This document shows, piece after piece, positions 24,346 to 64,000 of a stretch of DNA of 64,000 bases; the first letter of the stretch is position 1; every line of letters begins with the position of its first letter. This stretch comes from Gracilinanus agilis (Eukaryota). Below the pieces are notes generated by a model. That model did no database searches. It had not been told where the DNA came from and saw only the letters and a list, made by a program, of their open reading frames with translations. The position numbers were made by a program, and so were the translations under genes. The DNA lies in assembly GCF_016433145.1 (NCBI RefSeq), contig NC_058132.1, forward strand, positions 87,323,181 through 87,387,180, in the 5' to 3' direction.

Positions 24346-25323
24346 TCAGATAGTTTTCTGACTGGGGGCTTTGGTAATGGGCTCCTTTTTCCAGCAACCA
24401 TATTTGGTCACTTTGTCCCTAAACTCCTTAGTCTTTACTCCATAGATGATGGGGTTGAGCATAGGGGGCACGAGGAAGTAAAGATTGCCAAGAATGGTGT
24501 GAACATGGGGCGGAATGCCCCGACCAAACCGATGGGCCAGGAAAGAGAAAAGCGGAGGTGTGTAAGATGTCAGCATCACACAGATGTGTGTGGTGCATGT
24601 GTTGACCGCCTTGTGGTGAGCCTCCTTGGAGGAGAGTCGCATCACAGCCCGGATGATGAACACGTAGGATGAGCCAATGGCAGAGAAATCCAGGCCAACG
24701 ACCACCAGGGCTACCACGAGGCCATAGAAACGGTTGACGGTGGTGTCCGCACACACCATTTTCACCACAGCCATGTGTTCGCAATAGGTGGTAGGGATCA
24801 CCCGGCCCGAACAAAATGGCATTCGCTGAAGAAGGACGGGCATAGGAAGGATAAACGCGACGGCTCTCGCTAAGCTGGCCAGCGCAATGAGACCTATGCG
24901 GCCATTGGAGAGAATGGTGGCGTAGCGCAGCGGCTCACAGATTGCCACATAACGGTCGAAAGCCATGGTCATCAAAACGGCTGACTGCATGACAGAGATG
25001 GAGTGGATGAAGAACAGCTGGATCAAACAGCCCTCGAAGCTGATCTCCCTTTGGCCGAACCAGAAAATGCACAGTGCTTTGGGAATGGTGGTGGTGGACA
25101 TGCCCAGATCAGTGAGAGCCAGCATGCAGAGGAGCAGGAACATGGGCTTGTGCAGCGTGCGCTCTGTGGTGATGATGAACAGGATGGTGACATTACCCAG
25201 AACAGTGATGAAATACATGGAAGAGAAGGGGATTGATATCCAAAAATGGGTATCCTCCAATCCAGGGATGCCTTTTAGGATGAAGTAAGAAGGCTTCCCA
25301 TGGGTAAAGTTGAAGGTAGTCAT
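24346..25323 (-). CDS. Class I olfactory receptor, OR52 family, 325 aa, intact ORF
   Basis: Motifs LHKPM, MAFDRYVAICEPLRY, TYCEHMAVVK, KAVNTCTTH, HRFG and PPMLNPIIYGVKTKE; NFT glycosylation site. Candidate acceptors on minus at 25345-25346 and 25383-25384. Confidence 0.96.
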   Translation of the reverse strand: MTTFNFTHGKPSYFILKGIPGLEDTHFWISIPFSSMYFITVLGNVTILFIITTERTLHKPMFLLLCMLALTDLGMSTTTIPKALCIFWFGQREISFEGCLIQLFFIHSISVMQSAVLMTMAFDRYVAICEPLRYATILSNGRIGLIALASLARAVAFILPMPVLLQRMPFCSGRVIPTTYCEHMAVVKMVCADTTVNRFYGLVVALVVVGLDFSAIGSSYVFIIRAVMRLSSKEAHHKAVNTCTTHICVMLTSYTPPLFSFLAHRFGRGIPPHVHTILGNLYFLVPPMLNPIIYGVKTKEFRDKVTKYGCWKKEPITKAPSQKTI

Positions 25324-42585: not shown

Positions 42586-43536
42586 CTAGCTTCTTCTTAG
42601 ACCTAGTCCTAGGATCCGAGTACGGATCTGCTTGGTGTTGATGCCATACACTAATGGGTTAAGAACGGGGGGCACAAGGAGGTAGAGGTTAGCGAGAATG
42701 ATGTGGGCCTGCGGGGGAACATGACGGCCAAAGCGGTGGGTGAAAAAGGAAAAGAAGGCAGGGATGTAGAAGACAAGAATGACACAGACATGGGCTCCAC
42801 AAGTGCTGAAGGCTCGAAGCTGGGCATCCTGGGATGGCAGGCTCAGCACAGCACGGAGAATAAGAACATAGGAGGCTGCAATGAGCACTACGTCCATTCC
42901 TGTGACTGACAGTGCCACAGTGAGTCCATAGATGGTGTTGGGTTTAATGCTGGTGCAGGCTAGCTTGGCAATGCCCATGTGCTCGCAGTAAGTATGGGCA
43001 AGAACATGGCGCCCACAGAAAGGGAGACGCTTAATGAGTATAATAAAAGGGAAGACAAAGAGAAGACCCCGAGCAACACATGCTGCCCCAATCCTCCCAA
43101 TGACACTGGCATTGAGAATGGAGGTATAGTGCAGTGGGCGACAGATAGCCACGTAGCGGTCAAAAGCCATGGCTAACAGGATTGCTGACTCAGTGGCAAA
43201 GACAGCATGGACGAAGAACATCTGGGTGAGGCAACCATGAAAAGAGATGGTGTGGGCATCCAACCAGAAGATGGCCAACATCTTAGGGAGAGTGGTGGAG
43301 CAGAGAACCAGGTCTGTGACAGAGAGCAGGCAGAGGAAGAGGTACATGGGTTCGTGTAGAGTCTTGTCTGTTATAATAATAAAGAGGATGGTACCATTAC
43401 CTACAAGGGCAAGGATATACATGGAGCAGAAGGGAATGGAGATCCAGATGTGTTGGTCCTGCATTCCTGGGATGCCCAATAGGATGAAGGTGGATGGGTG
43501 AAAGGCAGTATCATTGGACATAGATTCAGTGAGCAT
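42586..43536 (-). CDS. Class I olfactory receptor, OR52 family (OR52U/OR52D-like), 316 aa from the first ATG, intact
   Basis: Motifs LHEPMY, TESAILLAMAFDRYVAICRPLHY, HTYCEHMGIAKLAC, RAFSTCGAH, THRFG and PPVLNPLVYG. The track start at 43590 is a TTG lying beyond the acceptor (tttgttttgtctAG, 43578-43579), so the ATG is at 43536 or 43521. Confidence 0.95.
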   Translation of the reverse strand: MLTESMSNDTAFHPSTFILLGIPGMQDQHIWISIPFCSMYILALVGNGTILFIIITDKTLHEPMYLFLCLLSVTDLVLCSTTLPKMLAIFWLDAHTISFHGCLTQMFFVHAVFATESAILLAMAFDRYVAICRPLHYTSILNASVIGRIGAACVARGLLFVFPFIILIKRLPFCGRHVLAHTYCEHMGIAKLACTSIKPNTIYGLTVALSVTGMDVVLIAASYVLILRAVLSLPSQDAQLRAFSTCGAHVCVILVFYIPAFFSFFTHRFGRHVPPQAHIILANLYLLVPPVLNPLVYGINTKQIRTRILGLGLRRS

Positions 43537-44976
43537 TGTGGAATGATGTCCAGGAGACTTTTCTTCCTCCTCCTGATCTAGACAAAACAAAAGAAGATTG
43601 TCAAAGATAAATAAAGGTGAGAGGAGGAGAATCTCACAGCAGATGAAAGAAACTATTCTTATATTACTCTTTTTAAATTAAATTTTAGTATTTTTTCAAT
43701 TAGCATACATAGATCTTCTGTCTTGCCCACCTCTCTTACCTACTGGGAAAGGAAAAAAAAAGAAAAAGAAAAGAACCAGCTATTCCAGTCCTCCCTATCA
43801 TAGTGAAATGCACTCATGTTCAGAAAAAAAACAACAAAACAAAACCTGACTTCCTCCAGAAAATCTATTTAGATGGATCAGACAATAGTCTGTCTTTACT
43901 GGTCTTTCCATCCGGAATTCCTCTAGTTTGTGATTCTTATTCCTGTTCATCCTCCTCTCAGAATGTATTTGACAATAATATTTCACTCCATGGTTTCCTT
44001 ATTGGTCTGTGAGGGCAGGGAGAAACCAGACTTATGAAACTGTCTCCCAAGAGATCTCATTCCAGCTCTATGCAGAGAGATATTTAAAAAACAGCTTGGT
44101 AGTGGTGCCCATTACTTGCCAAGAAATGAATCAAATAAAGAGTGGGTATTAGACAAAGGGGAGAGGTCAAATAGTGGCAATATGGGAGTATAGGAGTTGG
44201 AAAGGGGAAGAAGAAGGCTGAGTTTGATATCTGTCTGCAGAGAGAATAGATTTGTGGTTCTTCCAGGGGGAAGGAACAAAAACAATTCTTCCTGAGGGGT
44301 TAATGTTCCTACATTGTGATTTTTGGTGGTTCTAAAGTTCTATGACTACTTTGCTGTGAATTACTATTAGATTAAAATTCTCTGGAAACAATATATTAAT
44401 TTATAATTATTAGTAAAATTTGGAGTAAGAGAGAAATAGTCACATAATCATCTGACTGTGTCTCAGTTTACTGCATTTGTCTGTTTGCTAACCCAAAATG
44501 GCTGCACCAGGAAGTGTCCAACCTAAGACAGCCAAGAGCCAAAAAACCTAAAACAACCCTTCTCAATTCCTCCATCCGCTCTCTTATAAAGCCATTGATG
44601 TTATTCCTTCTGGATCTTTCTGGTTGGACAAATTTGATATCAGTCGGGATCAGAGGCCAGTCTTCATGATGCCAGAAGTCTGGGACAAGAAACAAGTCTT
44701 TTCTGGAATGCCAGGGAGCCATGAGGCCTCTGGCATCCTCCCATAGTTGGCATGTGTGCTCAGAGAGTGGGATCGATACTGATCAAAATAGGTTTTCAAA
44801 ACTTTCCTTTTTTAAAAAGAGGGTTATAATTTATATAAATTCATGCATTATCCAGATACCCAGTTTTCATCTCAAGCGGCAAGTCTTGCATGAGGTCCTT
44901 GCTGGGGCCAGCAAACTCAGGCTAATAGCCATTAATTAATTTGTCAGTTCTATAAAGCCTAGAAGATGACCTTCTA

Positions 44977-45225
44977 AGCAGCTAGATGGTGCAGTGTTTA
45001 GAACACTGGGCTTGGAGTCAGGGAGACCTAAGTTCAAATGGCCTCAGATATTTACTAGTTATATGATCTCAGGCAGCTCATTTCACCTGTTTGTTTCAGT
45101 TTTTCTTAATTATAAAATGATGAAAATAGCACCTACCTCAGGGGCTGTTGTGAGAATCATAGGAGATAAAATTTGCAAAGTGCTTAGTTGAATACCTAGC
45201 ATATTTTAGGTGCTTAATAAACACT
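44977..45225 (+). mobile_element. MIR/CORE-SINE
   Basis: gcagctagatggtgcagtg head and a gtgagaatc...gcaaagtgcttag...gtgcttaataaa tail. Confidence 0.8.
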
Positions 45226-45370
45226 CATTTTCTTCCATCCTTTCTCCACCCCCCATACTAAATATATAGAAATGACTGAGGACATATAGAGATTAGGAAT
45301 TTGGCTGCATCCTGAGGAAAATGAAAAAGATCCTCTGACCCCAAGTATCATTTCTGAGCTAAATGATGCA

Positions 45371-45577
45371 GTTGTTAAAGCATAGGGTCTAGAGCCAGGA
45401 AGACCTGGGTTCAAATCTAGCTTCAGATACTAACTAGCTCTGTCATCCTAGGTGAGTCATTGAACCTCTCTGTCTCATTTTCTTCAACTGTAAAATAACA
45501 CCTGGGTTTGAGGATCAAATGAGATAATATTAGTTAAGTGTCTGGCATAGTGCCTGGTACATATTAGGTACTTAATG
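45371..45577 (+). mobile_element. MIR/CORE-SINE
   Basis: ggaagacctgggttcaaatctagc...gaggatcaaatgagataata...catagtgcctgg. Confidence 0.8.
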
Positions 45578-45636
45578 CCTTCCTTCCTTCCTTCCTTCCT
45601 TCTTTCCTTCCTTCCTTCCTTCCTTCCCTCCCTCCC
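45578..45636. repeat. (CCTT)n tetranucleotide repeat
   Basis: Directly visible at the end of the MIR. Confidence 0.95.
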
Positions 45637-46702
45637 ACAGGATCTCTAATTCTACTAGTCACCTTCAAGTTTAAATTTCTGATCCTCTGATCTTTTTCAT
45701 TAAAGTGCTAAAAGCCTTTCTTTAATGGCAGAGATGCTGGGTCAGGGATAATGCCAAATTAAACTATTAGTAACAGAGAGATTAGAGAAAACAAAGCAGC
45801 ATTAGGATTAGTAAGAGGCAGTTCATAGAATAACAGATTCAGCCCTGGAAAGAACCTTACAGATTGATTCATTCAAACACTTCATTTTAGGGATGGAGGG
45901 ACAGAGAGATAGAAAGACTTTTCTAAAATTGCTCAGATTAATCCATTGAGAGTCAGGGTTTGAAACAAAGTCCTTTGACTAGATCTCAATATAAGAAGGA
46001 GCTTCCTAATAATTAGAGTTGTCCAACTATGAAATGGATGGGGGTATTCAAGCAGAGGCTAGAAGCCCACCTTTTGGGAATGCTCTCCAGAAGATTTCTG
46101 CACTGTGTATTGGACATAAGCGGATAGAGGAAAGTCCAAAACTGGACTAGATATCCCTGAAATGATCCTATAACTCTTAGACTCTGATTTAATGATTTTC
46201 TTCCTAACTAGGATTCAATTCTTAGGTCTCTAGCAAAGAAAGGGTTCAAAATGAGCTGCTTATTAAGAGAAAGAAGTGGAAAGATGTCCAGTCTGAAGTC
46301 TGACTGTGGATGGATGGAAGGCCAGGCAGTCCAAAAGGCACCAGGAAGGAGGAAATGTAGGATAAATACTGGTGACTTCCCAGCTGTCAGAGAGAACTCA
46401 GGGTATTGGCCTTGGTGCTCTTCACTATAGCATTGAGAAGGGACAAACTAATATGACTAGCTTCCCTATTCCCACCCCAAACCAAGAACTTGACTGGCAT
46501 TACAGAAGTAAGAAGGTCAAAGTATTTCTAGCAACTAGTGGAACAATCTTTTCTTTCCTTCCCTCATATGATTTGTGGAAACTTCATGAGGGGAGACACT
46601 TTATTTTATTTATTATTGAATAAATCCAAGTGACTTAAATTTCAGTTGGAATAAGTATCATAAATGTATAAACACATATGAATTCATTGCATTAAAATTA
46701 AT

Positions 46703-46885
46703 CTTTTTTAACCATTATCTTCTGTCTTAGAATTGATACAAGGATTGGTTCCAAGGCAGCAGGTCAGAAGGGCTTGCCAATTGGGGTTAAGTGATTTGCT
46801 CAGAGCTGTTCTGAGGCCAGACTTTACTCCAGGTGCTCCAAACTCTAGATCTGGCACTTTAGCTACTGAACCATCTAGATACCCC
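46703..46885 (-). mobile_element. Older SINE1_MD-like element
   Basis: ttggttccaaggcag...gggcttgccaattggggttaagtgatttgc. Confidence 0.75.
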
Positions 46886-49479
46886 CGAATTTTATTCTTT
46901 TATTGCATTTATTGAATTAAAATGAATGTTTAGATGCCTGCCTTTGGATAGCACTGCTCTGCAATCCTCTCAAATGTCAAAATACTCCATGCAAAGGGAA
47001 TTTCCCTGTTGCCTTATCTCATTTATTCTGTCTCAGTTGTAAATCTGTACCAGGTAGCAAATCCAAATTCTTCCCACATTACATGGAAATTTTTCCCTCT
47101 CTTTCTAGAGGAAGCTGGGAAAAGCACAACTCACCATTCTCTGTAGCATGATATTTCACATTACAAAACACAAGGTATCCCACCTTCTCTTTGACAGAGT
47201 TCCTCTTGGAGAAGGTTAGAGAGATCAAAAGTGTCCCTGAAAGGGCATTCAGAGTGCCTGACAGGCTATAGGGGACATGGAAGCAGGTATTGACCACATC
47301 CTCCATGACCCAGACTGAACTCTTATGTGACAGGCTATTTCTTAGGTACAACAGCCACAGGTGTGTGGTTGTAGTTTTTATGTGGACTGGGAAACGGAGT
47401 TCTGGGAAGGAAGGAATCATTTGAATCAAAAATTAAGATAAAAGCTCAGTTACCATAAAGCATGAAGAAGAAAAGGCTACAGGGACTTAGGATATCCCGT
47501 ACGCAAATGATTGCTGGACTGTAAAACTATATATCTGAGTTTTTTCATCTATCACTTTATGCCATTAGGTAAGTCACCTCTTTTCTCTGGCCTACTAAAG
47601 CTCTTTTCAAAGGGGACAATTATTTGTTCTCTACTTTCCTCAAAAGGTTGTGTCAGGCATCGCTTCAGATCATGGTTGTAAAAGACTTAATAAGTATAAT
47701 CTACGGCATAAATGGAAAATAGCATTATCTTGGATCCCTTTTATTCATTAAAAGAGTCACAATTTCATTCATGTGGATATACTGGTCATTGAGCCTTAGC
47801 TTAGTAGATAAGGTTTTTCATGGGCTGCTGTGACCAAAGGAATTCATTACCTGAAGCCAGGCTTCTTCTCATGAACTTTCTCTATTTAATTAGGCTGGAT
47901 GTCAGACATCAGAAGCCTAGTGTATTCCCAAGTCCATACTTGAGCTCTGACTTGCTTAGTAGCACTTGCTAGAGTCTTTAAAACCCAGAAGAGCAGGGAG
48001 AATGCCTTAACTAAATATAATTCCTTTCTTAACAACTAAAACATCACACTGTACAAAGTAGGCACTCTAATGTTTGTTGACTGATGGTGATCTATTGGCA
48101 TAAACAAAAACTCAATGAAGTATCAGAGGAAGAGTTTAGAGGAACATTATTCTTACTATTATTATAAAAAATCTTTTCTGAAGGGGGTGAGAGGGTAGAG
48201 CTCCTTAACCCTTATTTTCCATCAACACATTTACTATAGCAAAATCCAGGAATTTCTGGAGTAGCAGGAAAGATTCAGGTAAGAAGCAAAAGAGGACTTA
48301 CTGTGGTTGAAAATTCAAGGACCCTGGAATATGTGCCTGGATCAGGACCCTCTTTCTTTTTCCTAATGATTTGAGGAATTCAAAAGATTCTTTTCTGTTC
48401 TAGGGCTGAAGAGATAGTTAAAGATGATCTCCTCAGGTCTTTGCCTGAGGAGAGGAACACAAGATCACTGTTCACAGAAATGCCTCTCCCCAGTCCCTGC
48501 CACTTGGGCTTTCTTTGGAGGATAGTTCTGACTTCTTCTCTTCCCCGTGACATACCCAACACTCCACACTGCCGGCCACTTACTCAATCTAACCCAGGGC
48601 AGAGGAAATACAAGGGTACATGCAATTCCAGAAACCAAGATTCAGTCAGCTTTATCCTAGATCTCTGGGGACCAGTAGGAGGTGGGGAGATAACTGAAAT
48701 ATGGAGACTAGGGACTAGAGGAGAGTGGAAATATTTGTGGTCACAGCTGCTAAAAGCAGAACTCACATTTGGAGACCTGCCCCTCTCACTCAAGTCATAT
48801 CCTCTTGAGCTCTCGGAGATTTTTTTTTTGAGGACCTGGGCTCCAGGATCAAGTATAATCACAAGAAAGCCAAGAGTATTGGCCAGGGGCCAGGATCATG
48901 AGCCTTTGTTGAGCTGGGAGGCTAATTTTTAGTTTTGGAAGGTTTTCTTCTCTCACTCCATCTTCATCATCAAGGACTTCCCTAAGGACTAGAAACCTCC
49001 AGGGGACAGACTGGACAGTCTCATTATTTCTAGGATGGTAGGAAGAAAGAAAGAGAAAGAAAAGAAAATATTCTTTTATCCACACTACATTTATCACTTC
49101 TCTATTTGGAGGTGGCTGTGGCTTTCATCATTATTCTTTAGGAATTGTTGTTAGCCACTGTGTTGATGAGAGTTCTTAAGTCTTTCAGAGTTTATTATTT
49201 TTGAAATATTGTTTTTAGTGTATAAATTTTTATAGTTCTCAGTTTACTTTACATCAGTTCATACAAGTTTTCCTAGGTTATTCTGAAATGATTATCTTGA
49301 TTTCTTACAGCACAATAGTATTCTATTAATTTCATATATCATAATTTGGTTAGACATTATTCAAATGGTAGGTATCCTTCAGTTTCTAATTCTTTGCTTA
49401 ATAAACATTTTTGTTTTTATAACATTTCTTTCTGATGGTTCTTCTCCTATCTATCTGATCTGTTCTTTTCTGGATATTC

Positions 49480-50630
49480 ATTCAGGTCACACCTGCTAAG
49501 AGCAGGTGACCCTTAGGACACTGTTCTAAGCCCTCTTCTCCTCTATTTTATTTTACTCAGTGATTCCATAAATTTCTATGGATTAAATTATCATCTCAAT
49601 AATGATGATTCTTAGATCCATTTATCCTGCCCTAAGCTCTCTGATAATCTCCAGGTTCACATCTCCAACTCCAATATCTCAAACTAGATTTCCCATAGAT
49701 CTATAATATCAAAATTTCCAAAAATAAACTTACTTTCTTCTCATACTACCTCCCCCATAAACTTTCTATTTTCCTAATTTCTCAGTTCCCTCTTGAAGGT
49801 ACCACTATCCTCCCAGGTAACCAAGCTAGAAATCTAGTCATCTTAGACTCCTCACTCTCTCTTGACACACCCCCTCTCCCATGTCTAGTTTGCTGTCAAG
49901 GCTTGTTGATTTTACCATTATAGTAGCTCTCATATATACCCACCTTCTCTCTCCTGACACTACCACCACCCTGGTTCAGGCCCTCATCACCTCATATCTG
50001 GACTATTGCAATAGCCTGCTGGTTGTGGCTTCTTGCCATTAATCTCTTCCCATTCAAGCCAATCTATCACTCGGCTATCAAACTGATCTCCCTAAAAACA
50101 TAGATCTCATCATGTCAGTCCCCTACTCAATAAACTCCAGATGTTTCATATCAACTGCAGCATCAAATAAAATATCCCTGTTTGGCATTTTAAACCCTTC
50201 ATTAATGGCCCTCCGCACCTTTCCAGTCTTCTTCTATTTCACTCATCCAAGTAGACTTTGCAATTTAGTTAAACTAGCCTCTTTGCCTTTCCTCAAATGC
50301 AAAACTTCATATCTTGCATTGGGGCATTTTCAGTGGCTGTCCCTCAAGTCTGCAGTTTTCTTTCTCCTCATTTCCAAATTCTGGTTTCCTTCAAATTCCA
50401 GCTAACATTTTATATTTTATGAGAAATCTTTCCAGATCCCCTTAATTCTAATGCTTTTCATGTGTGGATTATCTCCAATTTCCCCTGTATCTTGATTATA
50501 CATAGCTCTTTGCATGTTGTCCCCCCCACTGCACTGTTAGCTCTTTTAGAAGAGGGTTTGTCTTGCTTTTCTGTATTTCTATAGCTTAGCACAGTCCATA
50601 TAAGGTGCTTAATAAATATTTACTGATTGA
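49480..50630 (+). mobile_element. L2 3' portion
   Basis: aaattatcatctc...accactatcctccc...ccctcatcacctcatatctggactattgcaatagcctgctgg...gtgcttaataaatatttactgattga. Confidence 0.85.
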
Positions 50631-50747
50631 CTCAGTTTTATTCCTCAGCTTTATCCCATTGGGAAAGCCTATAATAAGATGTGAGAGGGATGTTTGGGAA
50701 AAAATGAGTGATTTTTATCTATAAAATAGGCCTGGGGAGGACTGAAA

Positions 50748-50944
50748 TTTTTTTGTTTAAATCCTTACCTTCCATCTTAGTTCGATACTAAGTACTGGTT
50801 CCAAGGCAAAAGAGTAGAAGGGGCTAGGCAACTGGGGTTAAGTGACTTGTCCAGGGTCACATAGGAAGTGTCTTAGGCCATATTTGAACCCAGGACCTAC
50901 TGTCTTTAGGCCTGGCTCTCTATCAACTGAGCACCTAGCTTCCC
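50748..50944 (-). mobile_element. SINE1_MD-like element
   Basis: ccttaccttccatcttag...ggttccaaggc...ggggttaagtgacttgtccagggtcac...tttgaacccagg. Confidence 0.85.
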
Positions 50945-52160
50945 TGACCGGAAGCCTTTCTAGTCGTTAGCAATTTCTCCCTCATCTCAACAGCACCTCC
51001 CAGCTTTCCTAGGACCCTTTTCATTATTCAAGGTTCTGGGATCTGCCTCACATTCATTCTTTTATTCATTCACTCATTAATCCATTCATTCTTTTTAGAA
51101 ATGTCAGATTCTGTTCTATGAGCTGGGAATACAAAGTCAGAAAACAAACACAGCCTGATCTTTCTTTCCCTTTTGTGGCACTCAGAGATTTCCTACTTTT
51201 ACTTCCTCCCTGCCCTGGGTCGAGAAGGGCTGGACATCAGTCCTTACATCCAAGAAAAGTTGGTCAGAATTCTATAGGTTTTAGCTTTGGGTCTGGCAAG
51301 GTAGGCCACCCAAATAAAAAAGTCATGGAAAATGTGAAAATGAAAGCATCTGGGAATGGGGCTATGTTCCTCTCGCCTAGCTTGCCTCTTCTGCCATCTC
51401 CAGGCAGTGTCTTCCTGCTCAGACTTATTTTCAGTTCCTCCTTATGATTTCTGGGTGTGGTATCTTGGCCTTTGTCTTGGCATCTCTAGTTCTGCCCCTC
51501 TGCTTTAGATACTACCTGAAACGTTGAGAGATCTACTGAGAGTCTTGAAGGACACAAGTTCTTTGGAATCATGAGAGGGTAAGTTCTGCTTCTTTTCTAC
51601 TATCTTCATCATTAATTTTTCCACATTTCTTTCCTTATTCTTTTTTCTCTTCCTTTCCTTCCTTTTACCTATGCTTTTCCAATTCTAAGTCCCTTCCTTT
51701 CTCCCTCTCTCAATTTTTCTAGTCCTCTCCAAAAGTCCTGTCTCACACACACACATATACACATACATAAGTAAGCAGAACATATTTTTTCAATTCAATA
51801 TCATTATTCACATTTCCTCCAACACTTTCCCAAAGTCTAGACAACCAACAAAAACAATAAATCAAGCTTTCCTTTAGAGCTCTGGTTTTCTAGGTGTAAA
51901 TACTCTTTCTGAACTTTTCACAATTAACTTGATAGACACACTTCAGGCTGGCTCAAACATACCTCTGACTGAAAGTCTATTGGCTTATAGCAATCGTTTT
52001 TACAAATACAGAGCATCTGACTGTTTTCCCTGGCTTTCTTCAAGATTTGGTCTAAATCCCACCCACTGCAGGAGGCTCTTCCTGCCCTGATCTCCATTAT
52101 TGACTCCCATTTCTAACTTCACTTCTAGTCCCTTCTCTCTAAGATTACCTTCCCACCACA

Positions 52161-52190
52161 GTGTGTGTGTGTGTGTGTCTGTGTGTGTAT
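52161..52190. repeat. (TG)n microsatellite
   Basis: Directly visible. Confidence 0.9.
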
Positions 52191-52343
52191 GTTTGTGTAC
52201 AACATTTAAATTTTCTCCCCATTGATATGGGAGCTCCTTAAAGGGACAGGGACCTACTCTTTGCTTTAAATTTTTTTTTTTAATTCTATTCAGTGCTTAG
52301 CAAAAGATCTGTCACATAAAAGATTTAAAGTCTTATTGACCCT

Positions 52344-52606
52344 GGGCAGCCAAGTGCCATAGTGGATAGAGTGCCAGGACTGGAGTAAGGAAAACTCATC
52401 TCATTGAGTTCAAGAGATCTGAATCTGGCTTCAGACACTTACTAGATATGTGATCCTGGAAAATTCTCTTAACCCTAATCGTCTCAGGTTCTTTTATCTG
52501 TAAAATGAGCTAGAAAAGGAAATTACAAACCACTCCAGTCTCTTTGCCAAGAAAACTCCAGATGAGGTCACAATGAATCAGACATAACCGAAATAACTGA
52601 ACAAAC
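52344..52606 (+). mobile_element. MAR1-like SINE
   Basis: gggcagcc...gtggatagagtg...caaaccactccagtctctttgccaagaaaactcc...actgaacaa. Confidence 0.85.
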
Positions 52607-53559
52607 TGGATAATTGGACCCTACTCAAGAAACTTTGATGGTTCCCAGTTTCCTATTATTTCATTGGGTCCAAATTCTTTATTTAGGACCCTCACTAACT
52701 TGAGTCCTTCTACAAGTCAGTTGCTTTGCGAAAGAACTGGTCTTGAATATTTAGGCTTCATTGAATTGAGTCAGCATCCCAGAGGAATAACTTCTCTTGA
52801 TTGAACCAAGGAATGGAGGTACTGGTAAGGAGCCCACATTTTAGAAAGGACCTGAATTTGTATCCTGGCTCTCTTACTTACTGTGTGTCTCTTCACATGT
52901 CATTTGAACTTTTTAGGTCTGAGTTTCTTCATTAGTAAAATGGAGATGGGATGGACTTTAAGAATCTTTCCAAATCAGAATCTCTGACCTTTGTATTTGG
53001 TTTTACAATTTTTATCTTTTAAGCACATTTATTCCCAATGTGGGGCACAACCCCTGCTTTCCACTTTCTCCCAGTTCAGAAACCTTCTGCATCTGATCTC
53101 TCTTTATAAGCTCCTCCCCTTTTTCTGCTGCTGCCTAAAAATCTTTATAACTTATTTCAGCACCCACTTCCTTTTCCCCTCTTCTTCTCCCATTACATAA
53201 TCTAGACCACAGGAGTGTGTTTTTTTTTAATGTTTATTTACAAAAGAAAAAAGAATGCAAAGATTTACAAGTAATGTATACAGGTAAAATCAATAAAAAT
53301 ATTTTAAAAGTTTTTTTTATTTTCTATTTATATCATCTTCATTTCTAAATATCTCTTTTCTCTCTTCTACCTCTTATAACAAAGAATTAAAAAAAAAGAA
53401 AGAGGAAGGGAGGGGGGAAGCAGATGGGCAAAACTAACCAACATATTAACTAAGACACGACAAGGACAGTTTTCCACCTCCACAAAGACTTGAGTTTTCT
53501 CCTCTCTTCATCAGGAATCATTAAAATTCTAAATATTTATAACCACTTCTCCCAGTAAT

Positions 53560-54900
53560 TCCTTCAAATTCTCTTCCTATATTCTTCACCATTTCCAGTC
53601 AAGCTTTTTTTGTTTTTAAAGTTAATTATACTCATTGCCTTCACTTTCTCTCCCCTGTCACTTTCTTCTATACCTTATGCAATCTGACTTCTTACTCAAT
53701 CATTGAAGTGAAACTGCTGTGTTAAGTTGATTTCTTAACGGCCAGATCTCATGGACTGCTCTTAAACTTCATTCTTCATTTGACCTCTCAGAAGCATTTA
53801 ATACTATTGATCACCTGGATCAAAATGTGGATGCTCCCCCCCCCAACCCCTAATTCTGAGTTTTCCAGAAACTTTTTTCTTTTTATATGACTACTTCTTC
53901 TAAATCTGTTTAACAGGATCATGATGTAGCCAGTATTCTTTCTTTTCTATCTACTCTCTCTTGCTTAATGATCTCATAAAGTTTTAATTATCATCTCTAT
54001 GTAGATGACTCATGGATCTCTATATTTAGCTTTGGTCTTTCTTCTAAGTTCCAATCCTGTGTTACCAACTCCTTATTGGACATTGATAATGGGGTGACAG
54101 AGGAGGGCTGTGTGCTTCATAGGCATTCCACATTTTAAGTTTAAAAGAGAAGTCATTCTATTTTACTCTCAAAGTTCTTTTGAATTCTCCAGTTCTATAA
54201 AAGGCATCATTATCCTTCTAGTCACTCATGTTTGCAATCTTGATGTTATTTTCAATTTTTCATTCTCATTCACTTTACATATGCAATCAGTTGTCAAATC
54301 TTTTTATACCTATATAGTATCTCTGAAATATACCCCCTTCTTTCTAGTCACCTCGGGAACAATTTAATCCAGGCCTTATCACTTAATTAGAATACTGAAT
54401 TAACTCACTAAGTGACCTTTCTGCCTCAAGTTTCTCCTTACTCAAATTCATTCTCCACAAACTTCCCAAAATTTCCCCAAAGTGTAAGCTACAGCCCACT
54501 ACTCCATAATTTTACCTTTAAGACCAGATAGAAACTCCTTTGTTTGAGATGAAAACTCTTTATAATCTGATTACATCCTACCTTTCCTACTTCCATCACT
54601 TAGCACAGTGGCTGACACATTGCAAGTGTTCAATAAATGTCTGTCCCTTGACTTTCCAGCCTTATACATTACTCTCGTCTACACAGAGACCCCTGGGGCA
54701 CTTGTTACTGTCCTGCTTTGTTTTCCTTTTTATGGTTCAGCCAAAATGATGCTCTGTTCTTCACACATAGCTTTCCATTTTTTATTTCCATCTCGAACTA
54801 TCCCCCATGTTTGGAATTCACTCCCTCCATCATTTCCAACTCTGGTAATCCTTGCTTTTCTTTAAGACCCAGCTTAAGAAACACCTTGTACATAAAGCCT
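53560..54900 (+). mobile_element. L2 fragments
   Basis: gtgaaactgct...gaagcatttaatactattgatcac...aattatcatctctatgtagatgactc...ttagcacagtggctgacac...caataaatgt. Confidence 0.7.
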
Positions 54901-55639
54901 TAGAGGCTAATTAGTAACTTTGTCTCCACAACCTCAAAGTTAACATGCATCAGTTTTGAAAATTTTCCATTTGTAGGTGCCAAAATATTTTCCTGAAATG
55001 CCAGTCTGATCATGTCACTCTCTTCTCAACAAATATCCATGGCTATTGCCTCTAAAATAAAATTAAAAAAAAATCCTCTTTTTTGGTATTCAAAGTTCTT
55101 TATAACCTAAGCACTCTCCCACATTCACCTTTGTAGACTTCTTACACCTTACTCCACAAAATGATTCTTTGTCCAGTGATACTAGCCTCTGTGATCCAGT
55201 GATCTCTGATCCAGTGATTCTGGCAGAATGATCTGCCTCAGGAAGTAGTGATTTCTTCTTTACTCACTATCTTCTATTGGAAGCTGGGTTTCCCCTTGAT
55301 GAAGATGATTCCAATTAAAAATGGGATATTGGTCAAGTACTAGATAAACTCTGAAATTTACAATTTTCCTTTCTTTATTAGAAAGGAAAAATGTCATGTC
55401 ATTTTGAGCCAGTCTCTGTTCTGCAGGGGAGTAATACATAGGCACAAATGCCATTCCATTTGGGGTGGGGTCTTCTGCCTTTGGAAGAAAAGGAGAAATT
55501 CTATTTGATCATGCTCAAACTCTCTCTATAGGCCTTCTAGCCTGGCCTGACCTGCCTCCAGGAGGAAAGAGAAAAATTCCATTTTATCAGTTCTCTCCTC
55601 TGTTCCTCATCTTTAAAATCCATAATTTCCTGAAAGGAC

Positions 55640-58215
55640 TACATCTTGAGGCCAAATTCCTATGTTGATAAGCTACAAGAACTCATTCCTTATTGATTAA
55701 CATATTCCTACCCAATCATTTCTTCCCAGTACCAGAAATTCTGAATTCCCAGTAGTTACTATTCAAACCCCACTCTCCATGCACTGCCAACTCCTTTAAT
55801 TCCATCTTTTGGAAATGAACTCCAACCTTCCCAGAAGAATCTCACATTCTAAAGTTACCCACTCCTTTTGTTGTGATATCTGGAGTGTTTACCCCATAGG
55901 AAACAAGCTTGCTTCCAATGCAGATATTTTTCCCTCTCATATTCCTTTTATCTTTTGGCTCTCACTGAAATCTATTATTATCCTGAGGACATAGCCTCCC
56001 TGGTTACCCTTTTCAGCACTATCATTCCTGGCCTCTTTCCTCCCTAACCTCTCCCAGGTTGAATGGAGTAGTTGAAATACTGATTTCCAACTTCCACTTC
56101 TAAGTTCTGCTTCTACTACCATTATTCAGTAACTTCTACTCATTAAATCTACCAAAATTCTCCTAGATGTTATCTACCAACCAGCCAAACACTTCCTTCT
56201 TTCCTCAATAATTTTAGTGCCTGGCTCACATTCTTTCCCCCTCAACTCTTTCTATCATATTAGGAAATCTAAACATACCTTTACCTCTCAATAATTCAAC
56301 TTACCTATTTCCTACAGCTTGCTCCTCGATTCCATCTTAGCCACACAGAGAGATAGTCATATCTTTGATCTTGCTACCACCCACAAATACATCACACTTC
56401 TATGTTAATGAAATCTGAAATTCCCTTCTTTGATCAAATTAAAGTAGATTTGTCAATCAATTTCTCCCTCTTTACAAATCTAAATCCTGTTCATCTTTAC
56501 TACGACCTCCCATTGCTTGACTCTTCAGTTCTTTCCCCAAGTCATTATTTCTGCATTGGTTGCTTTATATTCCTTTCTTCATCTTGACTCCTTGGAGAAT
56601 GATTTCAACTCTATATTGTCCTCTTTTCTCAAGTACTTTGCCCCCTTTGCTTATTGCCAATCTTGTCCTACCAAGACCCAACTACTTCCTTTGCTCCTAT
56701 TCACAGCTGATCTAAGTTGTATAATAACAAAATCTTTCCTGGATGGGACCACTAACAATCTATGATACATGATTTGAATTGACCCCTCAGTGCTACAAGG
56801 CAATCTTTTTTCGATTCTCTAATTGGTTCACTAAACAGCACCTTTTCTAAACTTTTTCATCCCTCTTTACATATCACATGACTCTCTTTCATGTTTTCAT
56901 GCTTTCAGCTAAGGACCTTACCTCATATTTCACTGAAAAAGTTGAGGTCTTTCACTGAGAGCTCCCTTTTCCCCTTATCATCTGACATCACTTATATGCT
57001 TCTACAACTATTTCTACCTTCAACCATCTCACATGAAAATATGGCCCCTTCTTCTTGGCAAAACAAACTCCTCTACATGAGCCTTCCATACCATCTTCTC
57101 AATCTATTCATTGTATCTTCTTATCTTCAATCTCTCCCTATTAACTGACTGCTTTCCTGCTGCCTACACCATTTATCCCTCATCCTCAAAAAACCTTTGA
57201 TTGATCCATCCATCCATCCCTACCAGCCTTTGCCCCATATCCTTCACTTTTATGACTAAACTCACTGAGAATGCCAGCTATAGTCATTGCCTATACTTTT
57301 CCTCTCATTCTCTACTTATCTCACCACAATTTGGCTGCAAACTTTATCATTCAACTGTAATTCTCTCTCAAGGTTGCCAATAATCTCTTAATTGCCATAC
57401 TAAATGGCTTATTCTCCAGCCTTATTCTTTTTGATCTCTCTGTAGCATACGACATTATCAGTCACTTTCTTCTTGATACTGTTTTATCTCTAGGTTTTCA
57501 TGACTCTATTCTATCCTGGTTCTATTGAATTTCTGTTTCTTATCAGTCTTATCAGCCAGGTTTGCTACTGGTGGATGTCTTCAGGGTTGTATCTTGAACT
57601 CTTTTCTCTTTATAGCATTTTTGTTTGATGAACTCATCTGCTTTTAGGGATTTAATGATCATCTCTATGCTCATGATTCTCAGATCTACTTATCCAGCTC
57701 TAGCCTCTCCCTAAGACCAGACTCATTTCTTTGCTAGTTATTAGGCATGTTAAATTAGATATCTCATAGATGTCTTTAATTCAACATGTTTAAAACTGAG
57801 ATTATTGTTTTTCCCCCAAATCCTTCCCTCTCCACACTTCCCTATTGCTGTCAAGACCACTCTCACCCTTTAGTCAGCCAGGCTCACAACCTAAGTGTCA
57901 TAGCAACTTCAGTATCAGATGACTGGAATTCTTTCCTTCCTTTCTCCTTCTGGCTTCCCTAGCTTCCCTCAAGATATAGATAAAATTCCATCTTCTACAA
58001 GAAGTCATTTCAGATCTTTCTTAACACTAGTGTTTTCCTTTTGAGAATATCTCCAATTTAGTCTGTATATATCTTATTTGTACATAGTTGTTTGCATGCC
58101 ACCTTATGAGTTCTTTGAGATCAGGGACTGCCTTTTGCCTTTTTTTTTGTATCTATGACACTAATTACTAGTTCTGACATTTTGTAAGCACTTAATAAAT
58201 AATTTTTGACTCAAT
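55640..58215 (+). mobile_element. Long decayed L2 (ORF2 remnant through the 3' tail)
   Basis: Endonuclease-like tctttgatcttgctaccacccacaaat...aaatctgaaattccc, RT-like gatctctctgtagcatacgacatt...gatcatctctatgctcatgattctcag, and the tail gcacttaataaat. Confidence 0.8.
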
Positions 58216-58557
58216 GACATGTCTAGTTCTTACTGAATCTATTCTGTTTCCTAATTATTATTGCTTCCCTTCTAAGTGCTAAGAAGCTATCAATTTAACA
58301 ATTCACTCTATTTTTTTCCAGGGACCATCATCCAGCAGTCTGATACCATTATTTACTGTTATTCATTTTGAAAATGTAGTTTACTCATCTGTGGACTTCT
58401 ATCACATCTTCCATTTCCCATCACTCTTTCCTAACAAGAAGCATTCAGGGATGGATAAAGAATATATGTGTGTTTAGGAAAAGCGATCCTCAAGCATCCT
58501 CAGTCTGTCATTTTAGCCACTTTCTTCAGACCCTGAAGATCCATAATTGGGGAAGAG

Positions 58558-58837
58558 ATGGCAATGAATACTAGACAAAGACTAGTCCAGTACTTAAGAG
58601 AACTGAATGAAGATGAGTTGAAGACATTCAAGCTGCTGCTGAAAAATTCTCTTCTAGGAAAAAAATTTCTAAAAAATAATCAGAACAAGCTGGAGAAAGC
58701 TGGTCATACTAAAGTGGCCTCCATTATAGTTTCTCTCTTTGATGAACAGAGAGTATGGGATATTGTGATCAGAATCTGGGAGAAGATGGGATTAAAGGAG
58801 ATGTGTGAAAGAGCAAAGGCTGAGGATCCTCTGATAA
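58558..58837 (+). CDS. NLRP-family gene, first coding exon encoding a pyrin domain (PYD)
   Basis: LVQYLRELNEDELKTFKLLL...LEKA...VASIIVSLFDEQRVWDIVIRIWEKMGLKEMCERAKAE fits the PYD pattern. Acceptor tttcttcAG ends at 58529, the Kozak context is gagATGG, and the donor GTAAGT at 58838 follows 280 coding nt (phase 1, as in NLRP PYD exons). Confidence 0.92.
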
Positions 58838-59493
58838 GTAAGTAAAGACAAAAGTCTTCAACCTGGGGAAAGCTAAATTTCCATTATACCTACTGCTCTT
58901 TATGTTTATGCCATCCCTAATTGTCCATACTCTGAGTTGTGTGTTTCCTTCTAAACATGTCAATTTTTGTTGAGGGTACTACCATCCTTTTAGCCAACAA
59001 GGATTGTAACCTTGGAATCATCTTTCACTCTTCCTTTTCCCCTCAGATCCACATACAATAAGTTTTCGAGCATTGTTAAACCTACTTCCATAATATCTCT
59101 GGCAACCATCCCCTTCTCTCTACTAATACAATCTCTAACTTACTTCAAGCTCTCATTATCTCTTCCCTGGATTATTTCAACAACCTTTTGTTTGCTCTAC
59201 TTCCTGTTTCTACTCTTCCTTTATTCATGCCCTCCTATAGTTGCCAAATTGATAATCCTAAAATACAGATCTTACTTACCATGTCACTTTCTTATGCAAA
59301 AATTGTCAGTGATTCTCTATTTTTTAAGGATAAAATAGAAAGTCTAGACATTTAGTAAAGTTTACAGCATGGATCCCACTTACCTTTCCATTCCTTTCTT
59401 GAACTATCTATTCCATTTTGACCTATTAGCTATTCTATCTATATCATATTTTATCTTCCACATCTTTGCCATTGCATAGATGATCCTCTGTGT

Positions 59494-60482
59494 TGTAGTA
59501 TAGAGAGTGGGGGTCATATAGTTTTTTCTAGCTTTGGCTGAGTTCTAAATCAGTTAGGGTTTTGGAATCTTGAGAAAAAACAGTTGATTAGGGTCTCCCG
59601 TGGAGGGAGGTGGTCTGATCAGCCGAGCTGCCTCATTACCTAGCTGTAGTATTGAAATTTAGCCTAGCTTTGATATATTTACTTAAGAATTTATTATTTT
59701 GGATAAACCCTTTATATCTTCCTTCCCTAATATTATTTCCTACCTTCCCTCCCTTACCTTATATGCCTGTGGAGTTAATAAAGAGAGTAATTAGAGAGGA
59801 GTTCAAAATCTGTGAAGGGTTAATTGTTATTTGACAATATTAGATATAGAGAAAACTAATCAATCATCATTTATTCCCTTTAGATAGCAATAGTATTTGT
59901 AAACTGAGTTAAAGGCTGGTCCTTACTCAGACTCCATCTTTGCCTCCCTTCCCCCACCTGAGGTTGGGGAGACAACTGTTAGGGCTTTCCTTTGATTCAC
60001 TTTCCTGACAAATCATCCTTTAAAGATAATAAACCTTTTTGTGTTTCAACAGACCTATTAGTATAATTTGTCTGTTAGTTATTAAGAGAGGGAAGAAGAG
60101 GGGAAGAATCAACATACTCTGGGCTTGAAGGGAAGCCGGGTATCCATCTTGGAGGAAGGTGTAACTTCAAAACAAGTCCCTTCCTGTGAAATTAACTAAA
60201 CCCTGTTTGTTAATTTCAGTTTAGTCTATTTCCCTCAGCCTGTGTTTGAGTCTAAGTCCCAGTCTGTAAAGCCTGCTGTTTGTCTGTTTAGTTTAATTTC
60301 TCCTCTCCCTGAAGATCTCTGTTTCCCTTCTGTGTTATACTCCTGACTTCAGCCCTATTATATCCTGAATCTCCTTAATCCCAGCCTACCTGTAACTTAG
60401 ATTACCCACTTAGCAAGTCTCTGACAATCTCCTTCCAAATTCCCTTATCCCACACACCTTTCCTCATATTATCCCCATAACA
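59494..60482 (-). mobile_element. Solo LTR (989 bp) in the PYD-NACHT intron
   Basis: TGTA...AACA ends with a perfect 4-bp TSD GTGT (59490-59493 / 60483-60486). A minus-strand AATAAA near 59690 suggests antisense orientation. Confidence 0.7.
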
Positions 60483-62356
60483 GTGTTCACCTCTTAAAAT
60501 TTCTAGCTTACTCTAAATTATAGTTATGTTGGCAGTGCATACAGAGGCCTTTCCTGATCCACCAAGTTAGTGTAATCCCTCTTGAAATGATTTTTTAAAT
60601 AATTTATGTATACTTTGAAGTATATATGTATTCCCCAGGATGCTCAAAGATAACTAAATTATTTCTGGGTTTATTCTTTTTCTATCTCCACAACTGACAT
60701 CTTGAATATAGTATTTATTAAGTCCTTATTGAATTAATTTGAATTGACATGAATATTTTTGTGTCGTCTATCAACTTGTAGACTTCTTGAAGATAGGTCC
60801 CTCCAATTTCATGAACTCTATTACTGTAGGAATGCTTTTTCCTACCAGATTATTGCTTGCTTCTTCATCATTGCCTATATCTTTATGCAGCACCTCAAAT
60901 AATGATTCATGTAAACCACTATAAATAAGATCATTTTTGTAAAGTGGATTGAACTGCTACACTTTATTTACCCATGCTGGAGTATAGATGGGCCTTCTGA
61001 TATAATTTCCTTTTCCAAAATCAGATACTTTTCCTTATTCCTTGTGTTGATTATCTTAGTTCTTTCCCCTATGTGCTACCCTGGATTAAATGGAGTTCCT
61101 GGAATTCCTGTCAAGCTTTTTTTTTGAAAAGTCTTCTTTCTTCCCAGCCCAAGTTACTTGTATTATCTAGTATACATATGTACCCCAGAGTGACTGGGAG
61201 AGGTATAACCATTGGAACAAGAATGCCTTTTGTGCTTGGGAATGATCAAGAGGACTCAGAGTAAAAAAGAAATGAGGATCAGGAGTATTGGGATGGACTC
61301 TAGAGTCACATGAGAAGAGTATATGATCTGAGTTTCTGGGTGTTTTGTGGACCCTGGGAATATATCTTTTCCCAAAGGTCCTATTCCTCAGCGATGAATA
61401 GGTTCACTCTAATACATGTATTCAACATTTCTAATGAGAAGTTGGAGCAATGGTCACCTCAACCTTCACCAAGGTTTCTTTCAAGCAGAGATTAGGTTAC
61501 TTGGGATGAGATTCATGCTTTAGATTGAAGCTGAACTAATTATCTTTCAGGTGTCTTTTAACTCAATGATTTGACTCTGATAATGCTGATTCTAGTAATG
61601 ACTAACACTGGTGCTTTTGGGGAGTGAATATAGGGAGGGACTCACTGAGGCTCAGTTTGGCCCAGTTCAGAGAGTCTTTCTTCCACTTTTTCAAACTATC
61701 AATGGTTTATTCCTGAATATATTAGCTGCAGTCCTATTGAAAATCAGTAGAGGGTCACGAAAGAAGAGAGGAAGATTTACAATATATAATCCAGGAACAT
61801 TGCCATAAAAGAGGATTTGGAAAGGGAGCTTGAATGATATGCTGAAGGGGGCCTGCTAAGAGGAGAAGAGGGAGGAGTAAAAAAAAAGCCAATCCGAACA
61901 GCAAAAGTCATGTTCCAAGGTGAGAACTCTTTTAAAACATTCAGAAAGTGTGCTACAATTCTGTGGTCTTCCTTAAATTCCACAGGGTCCCCTCACATCG
62001 AGTTTTGGATCATTTTCATTTATTTTTTTGGCATTTTTTCATATGAACCTGAATTCATTTATTATATTAGGAGACCACATTTCCTTCTATGATTTCTGTT
62101 TTTTTTTCTGTTGCTTTATCTGTTTATATTTAAGGTCTTGAATTTTATTCTTCCTGAAATTTTTGATCTATTTTTCATTCTTTTCTTCCTTTATTTTCTT
62201 TTCCCTCCCTTATCACTTATTTCCTGACTGTGTTTTTTTAGGATGCTGGTTCCCATAGTATCTCAGCCTCCTACACAGGGCAATTCACTGGTTCATAAAC
62301 AGTAGGTCTTTGGCCCAAATGATTTGATGGTCAGAACTGGCTCCAGCTGTGTACTG

Positions 62357-62360
62357 TTTT

Positions 62361-62391
<31 letters not shown>
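62357..62391. repeat. Poly(T) tract
   Basis: Directly visible. Confidence 0.95.
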
Positions 62392-62394
<3 letters not shown>

Positions 62395-63322
62395 CTCAGG
62401 CTTAGTGGATAGCCCTCAGGCTGCACAGGCCCACATATGCAGTTGTTCTATCCTGGTGACTTGCTGAGTACATTTGTTTCTCAATTCTCTGGCCTGTTGC
62501 TGACAGTTCATAGACTATTTCCCCAAGCACTGGCAAGTCAGAACTTTGCAGCAATTGTGCTTCCATATTGTAGCCCCTGGTAGGATTTTATTCCAGAAAC
62601 TCTGTGGCCAGGTTGGTCATCAAGGAATGGACAAAGCTCCATTTTCACAACACTGTAAAAAAGAAGAGGGAAAAAAAGAGAGACAGACAGAATCTTTAAA
62701 AAACAGCTGAAATTGTTTTTATCTTTGGCACATAATTTCTATTTTGTAGTGGTTTGAAAGGTCATGGGAATCAGAGAAAATGTTTGATCTATCCTTTAGT
62801 TGCTCACATAACCCAAAACAGTGAGAACCCTATGTTCTGCATGTTCATTTTTTTCAAGTAGATGCAACTAAGTCTTAGGTTTCAGATGTCCCTTTTCACA
62901 TTCCCATATTACTTTCCACTATCTGAAAAAAAACCTGAAGGCAATATCCCAGAATAACTCTATGTAGCTCCACACCACTACTGAAGATTTCTGAAGATCC
63001 CTAATATTGGGAAAATTAAAAGAGTATATAGTTACTTAGGAGATAAACAGGGCCTTTGCCTGATTAGTGTCAGTAAAATTTGTCATTATCTCTATGGAAT
63101 CAGGGACAATCAATAATTTCCTTTAAAAGTTATTTAGAAAACTTTCTTTGACTCAAGACATGGAAATTTGAGAATGAAGGTGAAAAAATATTTTTAATGC
63201 TACTGAAGACAGTACCAGGTACACACTTTTACTCTAAGGACTCTAGAATTGTCCCAATTAGAGATAACACTCTGGAACTGGAGATCTTGTATTTTTCATG
63301 GTTTTTCCTCTCACTATTATAG

Positions 63323-64000
63323 GTAAGAGAAGAAAATATATAAAAATAATGAAAGAGAAATTCAGCCTCACTTGGGATGGTAGCTCTTCTTGTCTTGGAA
63401 ACCTTAGAGACTTAAACAAGGAATTCATACCCCTTTTGCTTCTCCATAAGACCAAAGCATTGAAGAATATACGCAAGGAAAATAGAATTGTCTCAGTCGT
63501 GACAAAGCAAGCACACATCATTGACATACCAGAATTATTTGGGCATGATGAAAGGAAATATGTTCCACAGACTGTTGTGCTACGTGGTGCTCCTGGAATT
63601 GGGAAAACAATACTGACCAGAAAGATAATGCTAGACTGGGCAGAGGGGGACCTCTTTCAGGACAGGTTTAAAAATATTCTTTATCTGAACTGTAAGACAA
63701 TAAACCTTACATTAGAGATGAATTTAGTTGATCTGCTTTCCAAAGATTGGCCAGACCTCCAAGCACACATAGAAACAATTATGTCTAAGCCCAATGGACT
63801 CCTTTTTATTATTGATGGTTTTGATGAACTGAAGTGGCCCTTTGAGGAACTTGAACCTGAACTATGTAATCACTGGAAGGAGAAGCATCCAGTGCCTGTC
63901 CTTCTTTGCAGTTTACTATGGAAAACAGTGTTTCCTGAGTCATCTTTACTGATCACTACACGGTCCTCAGCTCTGAGCAGGTTCAGGTGCTTATCAGGTG
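63323..64000 (+). CDS. NLRP-family gene, FISNA-NACHT exon (open at the window edge; probable frameshift near 63975)
   Basis: Phase-1 acceptor ttttcctctcactattatAG ends at 63322. The frame reads KRRKYIKIMKEKF... (FISNA), Walker A GAPGIGKT (63586-63609), LDWAEG, Walker B LLFIIDGFDEL (63799-63831) and sensor 1 LLITTR (63946-63963). Confidence 0.93.

Follow-up and report, generated by a model that had tools for sequence, protein, structure and literature searches.

The right-hand end of a 64,000-nucleotide stretch of the Gracilinanus agilis genome (the window, with positions counted from its first letter) carries the beginning of an NLRP-type gene, NLRP1, which is transcribed from the plus strand and lies beside a cluster of olfactory receptor (OR) genes. 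The first exon (58558..58837) starts with the ATG at 58558 and encodes a pyrin domain (PYD). The open reading frame (ORF) 58558-58845 on the plus strand matched Pfam PYRIN with an E-value of 8.7e-20, and the exon ends in phase 1 at 58837, where the donor context A|GTAAGT (GTAAGT at 58838-58843) conforms to the consensus. The acceptor of the second exon consists of a pyrimidine tract and an AG at 63321-63322, and the exon starts, again in phase 1, at 63323. Its first 678 bases (63323..64000) lie inside the window, whose end cuts the exon, and comprise a pre-NACHT stretch followed by Walker A, Walker B and sensor 1 in a frame of 226 codons that stays open through the final base. The Pfam NACHT match had an E-value of 4.3e-38, with model positions 1-135 of 167 inside the window, and the Walker A (GAPGIGKT), Walker B (LLFIIDGFDE) and sensor 1 (LLITTR) motifs were intact. 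Since both splice sites are of phase 1, the PYD and NACHT exons join in frame, and the predicted junction (..DPLI-S-KRRKY..) matches that annotated in koala NLRP1 (..DPLM-G-NRRKY..). The NACHT exon of koala is ca. 1.68 kb long; the window shows the first 40% of the opossum exon, and ca. 320 codons of the gene are visible. An earlier note on this DNA had proposed an NLRP-type gene built from a PYD exon and a phase-compatible NACHT exon, and the Pfam matches and splice sites confirm this. Based on the comparisons described below, we consider, with a probability of about 0.9, that these exons make up the 5' part of the G. agilis orthologue of NLRP1.

Intron 1 (58838..63322, plus strand) is a phase-1 intron of 4.5 kb whose splice sites were both read, and it is colinear with the koala intron except that the latter is shorter by ca. 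2 kb. A high-copy interspersed repeat occupies ca. 59335-60643 within it, where the summed contig depth reached 10^4-10^5 as compared to ca. 27 in the flanks. No further NLRP-like coding pieces were found within the 64-kb window. The stretch between the PYD and NACHT had been labelled FISNA in the earlier note. This label was dropped: no Pfam FISNA match was obtained even at E<=10 with the 99 pre-NACHT residues of the window or with the same stretch of koala NLRP1, though phmmer aligned the window stretch to the FISNA region of NLRP3. The FISNA domain is present in marsupial NLRP3-like proteins.

The best match of the PYD among solved structures was the PYD of human NLRP1 (1pn5; E-value of 1.8e-13, 53.6 bits). 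The segment EQRVWD..WEKMGL of the window PYD aligns to EQRAWD..WEQMGL of human NLRP1, and the NLRP1-like C-terminus noticed earlier in this domain was thereby upheld. Closer relatives were found in marsupials. The PYD was 79% identical to residues 1-94 of koala NLRP1, the two exons together showed 72-79% identity with koala NLRP1, and the NACHT fragment was 82% identical, without gaps, to residues 6-227 of Monodelphis NLRP1 (XP_007491239.2; 222 residues). In an exhaustive search of representative proteins with the NACHT fragment, koala XP_020831609.1 (NLRP1) was the sole close relative of full length, at 73% identity, and the second-best match had 48%. A word search with the 225-aa NACHT fragment alone, in which a length filter restricted the matches, gave only short fragments from reptiles and has no bearing on the orthology. 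XP_020831609.1 has the Pfam architecture PYRIN, NACHT, WH, HD2, FIIND, UPA-FIIND and CARD, and the combination PYD-NACHT-FIIND(ZU5-UPA)-CARD defines NLRP1. When koala NLRP1 was used as the query, ca. 120 relatives were listed, and these were named NLRP1 save for a few named 'NLRP3-like' or 'NLRP12-like'; among the listed matches, Trichosurus, Petaurus and Monodelphis were followed by eutherians at 40-49% identity. RefSeq uses the name NLRP1 in five marsupials, namely Monodelphis, koala, wombat (XP_027726053.1), brushtail possum (Trichosurus) and sugar glider (Petaurus).

The NACHT-WH-HD2 module was analysed in a maximum-likelihood tree of 64 rows, which were hand-picked from 135 so as to cover every clade, with 71 unnamed representatives omitted; supports are given as ultrafast bootstrap / SH-aLRT. 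The window sequence grouped with Monodelphis NLRP1 at 100/99, the marsupial NLRP1 clade was supported at 100/100, and marsupial and eutherian NLRP1 were sister groups at 96/92. NLRP14 (bat, deer mouse and Tasmanian devil), NLRP2, 4, 5, 9 and 13, NLRP3, NLRP12 and marsupial 'NLRP3-like' proteins all fell outside the NLRP1 clade. A quick tree of all 135 rows had the same topology, with an SH-aLRT of 89 for the therian NLRP1 clade. The human NLRP1 protein entered these comparisons as one row in the trees and in one short alignment. By these observations, the window gene is the 1:1 orthologue of therian NLRP1. The earlier note had favoured a marsupial-specific paralogue with a generic NACHT; the tree of the NACHT module, the marsupial intermediates and the domain architecture speak for an NLRP1 orthologue in its place, and the reading as a new lineage-specific sensor is wrong.

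Several points weigh against the assignment to NLRP1 and have to be set beside this evidence. In raw scores, the NACHT fragment came closest to the structure 9ln6 (161 bits), followed by NLRP3 (145 bits) and human NLRP1 (135 bits); from its length and its PYD match, 9ln6 is presumably human NLRP14 fused to MBP. Since pairwise scores to eutherian proteins are thus indecisive, the case for orthology is made by the marsupial intermediates, together with the architecture and the tree. The support for the therian NLRP1 clade (96/92) is good but short of maximal. The FIIND and CARD of the G. agilis gene lie beyond the window and are predicted by orthology. Besides, no G. agilis NLRP1 protein of at least 645 aa was present among the listed relatives of koala NLRP1, though other G. 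agilis proteins are contained in the same database, and therefore the gene may be broken, split by a gap or unannotated downstream of the window. Finally, no public RNA run matches the window stretch.

The last points bear on the most serious alternative, in which the gene is NLRP1 by descent and became a pseudogene or was truncated in G. agilis through a lesion downstream of the two intact exons. A G. agilis protein is missing among the listed relatives, whereas Monodelphis, koala, wombat, Trichosurus and Petaurus each have one. The listed NLRP1 matches came from koala, Trichosurus, Petaurus and Monodelphis, with wombat inside the koala cluster, and none was listed for dasyurids, tammar, bilby, Dromiciops or G. 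agilis, which hints at repeated loss or at poor models. Tammar, dasyurids, bilby, Dromiciops and G. agilis do contribute other NLRPs or the OR orthologue to the database, and the missing entries may be lineage losses or merely poor gene models. Furthermore, the dN/dS values against koala were 0.39 (PYD) and 0.55 (NACHT fragment), and the latter implies only moderate constraint. On the other hand, the part of NLRP1 inside the window contains no stop, frameshift or broken splice site, and all ATPase motifs are intact. The NACHT DNA aligned without gaps to the koala exon up to the final base, and near the window end the gene is in the same frame as Monodelphis NLRP1 (..SSALSRFRCL.. in the window and ..SSALMRFRCL.. 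in Monodelphis), the last two codons differing from koala and Monodelphis by substitutions only; a 1-bp deletion suspected at 63961-64000 is thereby not supported. Contigs from the one public Logan run that matches the stretch covered both exons at ca. 26-29x and showed neither indels nor coding differences, and one contig extends 1.6 kb past the window. The run is of DNA that probably came from the sample used for the assembly, and its contigs check the assembly and not the species. The absent gene model may also just reflect assembly gaps. The two dN/dS values indicate past, moderate constraint, as expected of a fast-evolving immune sensor. Taken together, a broken G. agilis gene is a real but minority possibility, and we infer that NLRP1 is complete and expressed in this species, its being intact having a clear though not overwhelming advantage.

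By orthology, the full gene would extend a further 25-30 kb past the window and would be expected to contain the remainder of the NACHT-WH-HD2 module and a much reduced leucine-rich repeat (LRR) part, which in koala is a single 171-bp exon, followed by a FIIND (ZU5-UPA) and, at the C-terminus, a CARD. This CARD is present in NLRP1 of koala, wombat, Trichosurus, Petaurus and Monodelphis, and the same five species conserve the self-cleavage motif ENPSF|S and the upstream His. According to established NLRP1 biology, the FIIND would cut itself at the conserved SF|S site, and the two halves would stay associated, the N-terminal PYD-NACHT half serving as sensor and as inhibitor of the UPA-CARD half. 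Pathogen activity or stress would then lead to proteasomal removal of the N-terminal half, and the UPA-CARD so freed would polymerise and recruit caspase-1 directly or through ASC. Caspase-1 would in turn bring about the maturation of IL-1beta and IL-18 as well as pyroptosis. Because the marsupial orthologues keep ENPSF|S, the upstream His and the CARD, this standard mechanism would be expected to operate in marsupials in all its steps.

Eutherian NLRP1 (human NLRP1 and mouse Nlrp1a/b) forms the sister clade, and the marsupial orthologues have the same FIIND-UPA-CARD C-terminus with the SF|S site; as given above, however, the identity between the two groups is only 40-49%. Marsupial NLRP1 is shorter (ca. 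1170 aa) than its eutherian counterpart. The spacer between the PYD and NACHT has ca. 90 aa in koala as compared to ca. 200 aa in Elephantulus, and the human spacer of ca. 235 aa holds the viral-protease bait ('tripwire'). The LRR part of koala NLRP1, in which the single 171-bp LRR-type exon is present and no Pfam LRR was found, is likewise reduced relative to eutherian NLRP1. Such a compact protein, in which the PYD-NACHT spacer is short and the LRR nearly absent, could help in recognising the ancestral parts of the sensor. Within marsupials, the Monodelphis NLRP1 model is without a PYD exon, unlike the window, where this exon is intact. The gene itself is already known. NLRP1 is annotated in other marsupials, an opossum FIIND of the NLRP1 type was aligned in 2011 (PMC3210808), and opossum NLRP1 is listed in a recent survey (10.1101/2025.06.19.660630). 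The finding is thus real but ordinary.

On the 5' side of NLRP1, the window contains three OR genes of class I, all of which are intact. The nearest one ('OR52D1-like'; 42586..43536, ORF 42586-43590, minus strand) lies head-to-head with NLRP1, matched Pfam 7tm_4 with an E-value of 3e-113, and has a translation identical to a protein in GCA_016433145.1. Its tandem partner (24346..25323, minus strand) and a third OR (15459..16430, plus strand) matched the same model with E-values of 5e-108 and 2.7e-94, respectively, the third being ca. 51-53% identical to the other two. From the ATG of the nearest OR (43536) to that of NLRP1 (58558), the distance is 15,022 bp with divergent transcription, in agreement with the divergent class I OR at ca. 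15 kb described earlier. The intergenic region (43591..58557) of 15 kb is colinear with koala, and a 163-aa ORF within it (48441-48932) gave no Pfam match.

This arrangement is shared with other marsupials. Koala NLRP1 is a minus-strand gene of NW_027556098.1 whose 5' end lies at 352,526,439, and the koala orthologue of the nearest OR starts at 352,541,772 on the plus strand, so that the two genes are also head-to-head, at 15.3 kb as compared to 15.0 kb in the window. Alignment by blastn gave blocks of 70-76% identity to koala that cover almost all of the intergenic DNA. Koala NLRP1 resembles the window gene in the PYD-NACHT splice junction, in the OR neighbour at 15 kb and in the colinear intergenic DNA. 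In wombat, the OR and NLRP1 are on one 192-kb contig, and in Monodelphis and Trichosurus they are each on one chromosome-size record. The head-to-head OR-NLRP1 pair is conserved across American and Australian marsupials; since it is found in opossum and koala, it is older than the split between the two groups. On the 3' side, a convergent gene of 714-776 aa lies ca. 9 kb from NLRP1 in koala, wombat and Trichosurus, and Pfam identifies it in koala as a C2H2 zinc-finger gene; no gene was found within 10 kb of Monodelphis NLRP1.

A second NLRP gene of marsupials has a similar setting. Koala 'NLRP3-like' XP_020823543.1 lies 2.9 Mb beyond NLRP1 on the same chromosome, in the same orientation and with an OR 10 kb behind it, and like the window gene it is a PYD-NACHT gene among class I ORs. 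It differs in having PYD, FISNA, NACHT and LRRs without FIIND or CARD, belongs to another clade, and is 44-46% identical to the window fragment. We take it to be of the type called NLRP-OR52I1. That type, an NLRP gene of marsupials that is without a eutherian orthologue and lies beside class I ORs, is described in a preprint (10.64898/2026.04.26.720791), and an NLRP among class I ORs in marsupials is thus already on record, for another gene. With NLRP1, two different NLRP genes lie among class I ORs in marsupials, which counts against one special 'innate-sensor slot' in the OR cluster.

The same precedent is one argument for the reading of the window gene as a marsupial-specific NLRP paralogue that is without a eutherian counterpart and was recruited to the site where eutherians have the TRIM6/34/5/22 cluster. 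Identities of the NACHT fragment to eutherian NLRP1, to NLRP14 and to marsupial NLRP3-like proteins are all similarly low (40-46%), and the class I OR neighbours are unlike those at the eutherian NLRP1 locus. Nevertheless, the orthologues of the window gene bear FIIND-UPA-CARD and group with eutherian NLRP1 at the support given above, and the koala gene of the NLRP-OR52I1 type is a distinct one, 2.9 Mb off and in the other clade; such a paralogue is thus very improbable. Orthology to NLRP14, a eutherian NLRP near ORs on human 11p15.4, was raised by the scores against solved structures (9ln6 as the top match of the NACHT fragment, and 51.7 bits for the PYD, nearly equal to the 53.6 bits for NLRP1) and was ruled out, as the least probable reading of all, by the tree and the architecture, since marsupials own a separate NLRP14 (Sarcophilus, Sminthopsis and Antechinus) that lies outside the NLRP1 clade, though its own position in the tree is unsettled, and with which the window gene does not group, and since NLRP14 proteins have LRRs but neither the FIIND nor the CARD seen in the window gene's orthologues. 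NLRP14 and NLRP10 are likewise NLRP genes beside ORs, in clades separate from that of the window gene; in human, both are presumably located at 11p15.4 near class II ORs.

The OR locus was also compared with that of placental mammals and platypus. The nearest OR was 95% identical to its koala orthologue, 85-86% to those of rodents (Mus caroli, 85%), 81% to that of cattle and 78% to that of platypus, and the name attached to it is 'OR52D1-like', not OR52U or OR52P. On chromosome 7 of Mus caroli (ca. 106.97 Mb), the OR orthologue has a same-strand neighbour 7 kb downstream, an OR that shares 81% identity with the one at 24346-25323 of the window. On chromosome 15 of Bos indicus (ca. 48.27 Mb), an OR occupies the matching tandem position, its homology to the window OR being presumed from position. 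The partner is thus conserved in mouse and probably in cattle, and the tandem OR pair is older than therians. For receptors of this family, both ORs show unusually strong conservation, which suggests a non-olfactory role or a fixed ligand. On the side that NLRP1 occupies in marsupials, no gene was called in the 10 kb upstream of the OR pair in mouse and platypus. A tblastn search for NLRP1 relics in the mouse, cattle and platypus flanks gave nothing at E<0.9, the visible 10 kb being less than the 15-kb marsupial spacing. No TRIM was called within 10 kb of the orthologue of the nearest OR in mouse, cattle or platypus. In Bos indicus, an apparently intronless hnRNPA1-like gene (RRM_1 x2 and an HnRNPA1 LC domain) is located ca. 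9 kb upstream of the OR orthologue, at ca. 48.28 Mb on chromosome 15.

Regarding the eutherian NLRP1 locus, human NLRP1 is located at 17p13.2 between MIS12/DERL2 and WSCD1, and the marsupial OR/NLRP region presumably corresponds to human 11p15, the site of NLRP6, NLRP10 and NLRP14. In Chrysochloris, the single species examined for the eutherian NLRP1 flank, no gene was found within 10 kb. Mis12 has been named as the usual flank of NLRP1 (10.1101/2025.06.19.660630). The immediate marsupial neighbours differ from those that flank NLRP1 in eutherians: the 5' one is a class I OR, and the 3' one is a C2H2 zinc-finger gene in koala and a convergent gene of similar size in wombat and Trichosurus. The earlier note had named, as evidence that would speak against its paralogue, 1:1 orthology to a eutherian NLRP in conserved synteny; the orthology was found, whereas no conserved synteny was seen in the immediate neighbours, for which 10 kb on each side were covered.

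These differences admit a tentative scenario in which the marsupial position is the older one. NLRP1 might have arisen in an NLRP/OR neighbourhood of the 11p15 type and moved in the eutherian stem to 17p13.2 (MIS12), gaining the long protease-bait linker and a larger LRR; we regard this as possible but doubtful, and a reverse move of NLRP1, in the marsupial stem, is equally open. The differing genomic address matters when synteny, for instance with MIS12, is used to call NLRP1 orthologues outside eutherians. NLRP1 is among the best-studied inflammasome sensors, and the location of NLRP1 beside OR genes in marsupials, unlike in placental mammals, is mildly interesting. What remains is the question of where NLRP1 sits, a modest one of comparative genomics, and no long-standing question is opened by it.

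One further marsupial protein combines parts of both NLRP types. XP_068965094.1 of Petaurus breviceps (1440 aa), named 'NLRP12-like', has its NACHT in the marsupial NLRP3-like/NLRP12-like clade and a FIIND-UPA-CARD C-terminus that is 65% identical to that of koala NLRP1, and its gene is located on the same 4.17-Mb contig as the NLRP1-like gene of the glider. Either two genes were fused in this model, or the glider has a genuine second NLR with FIIND and CARD.

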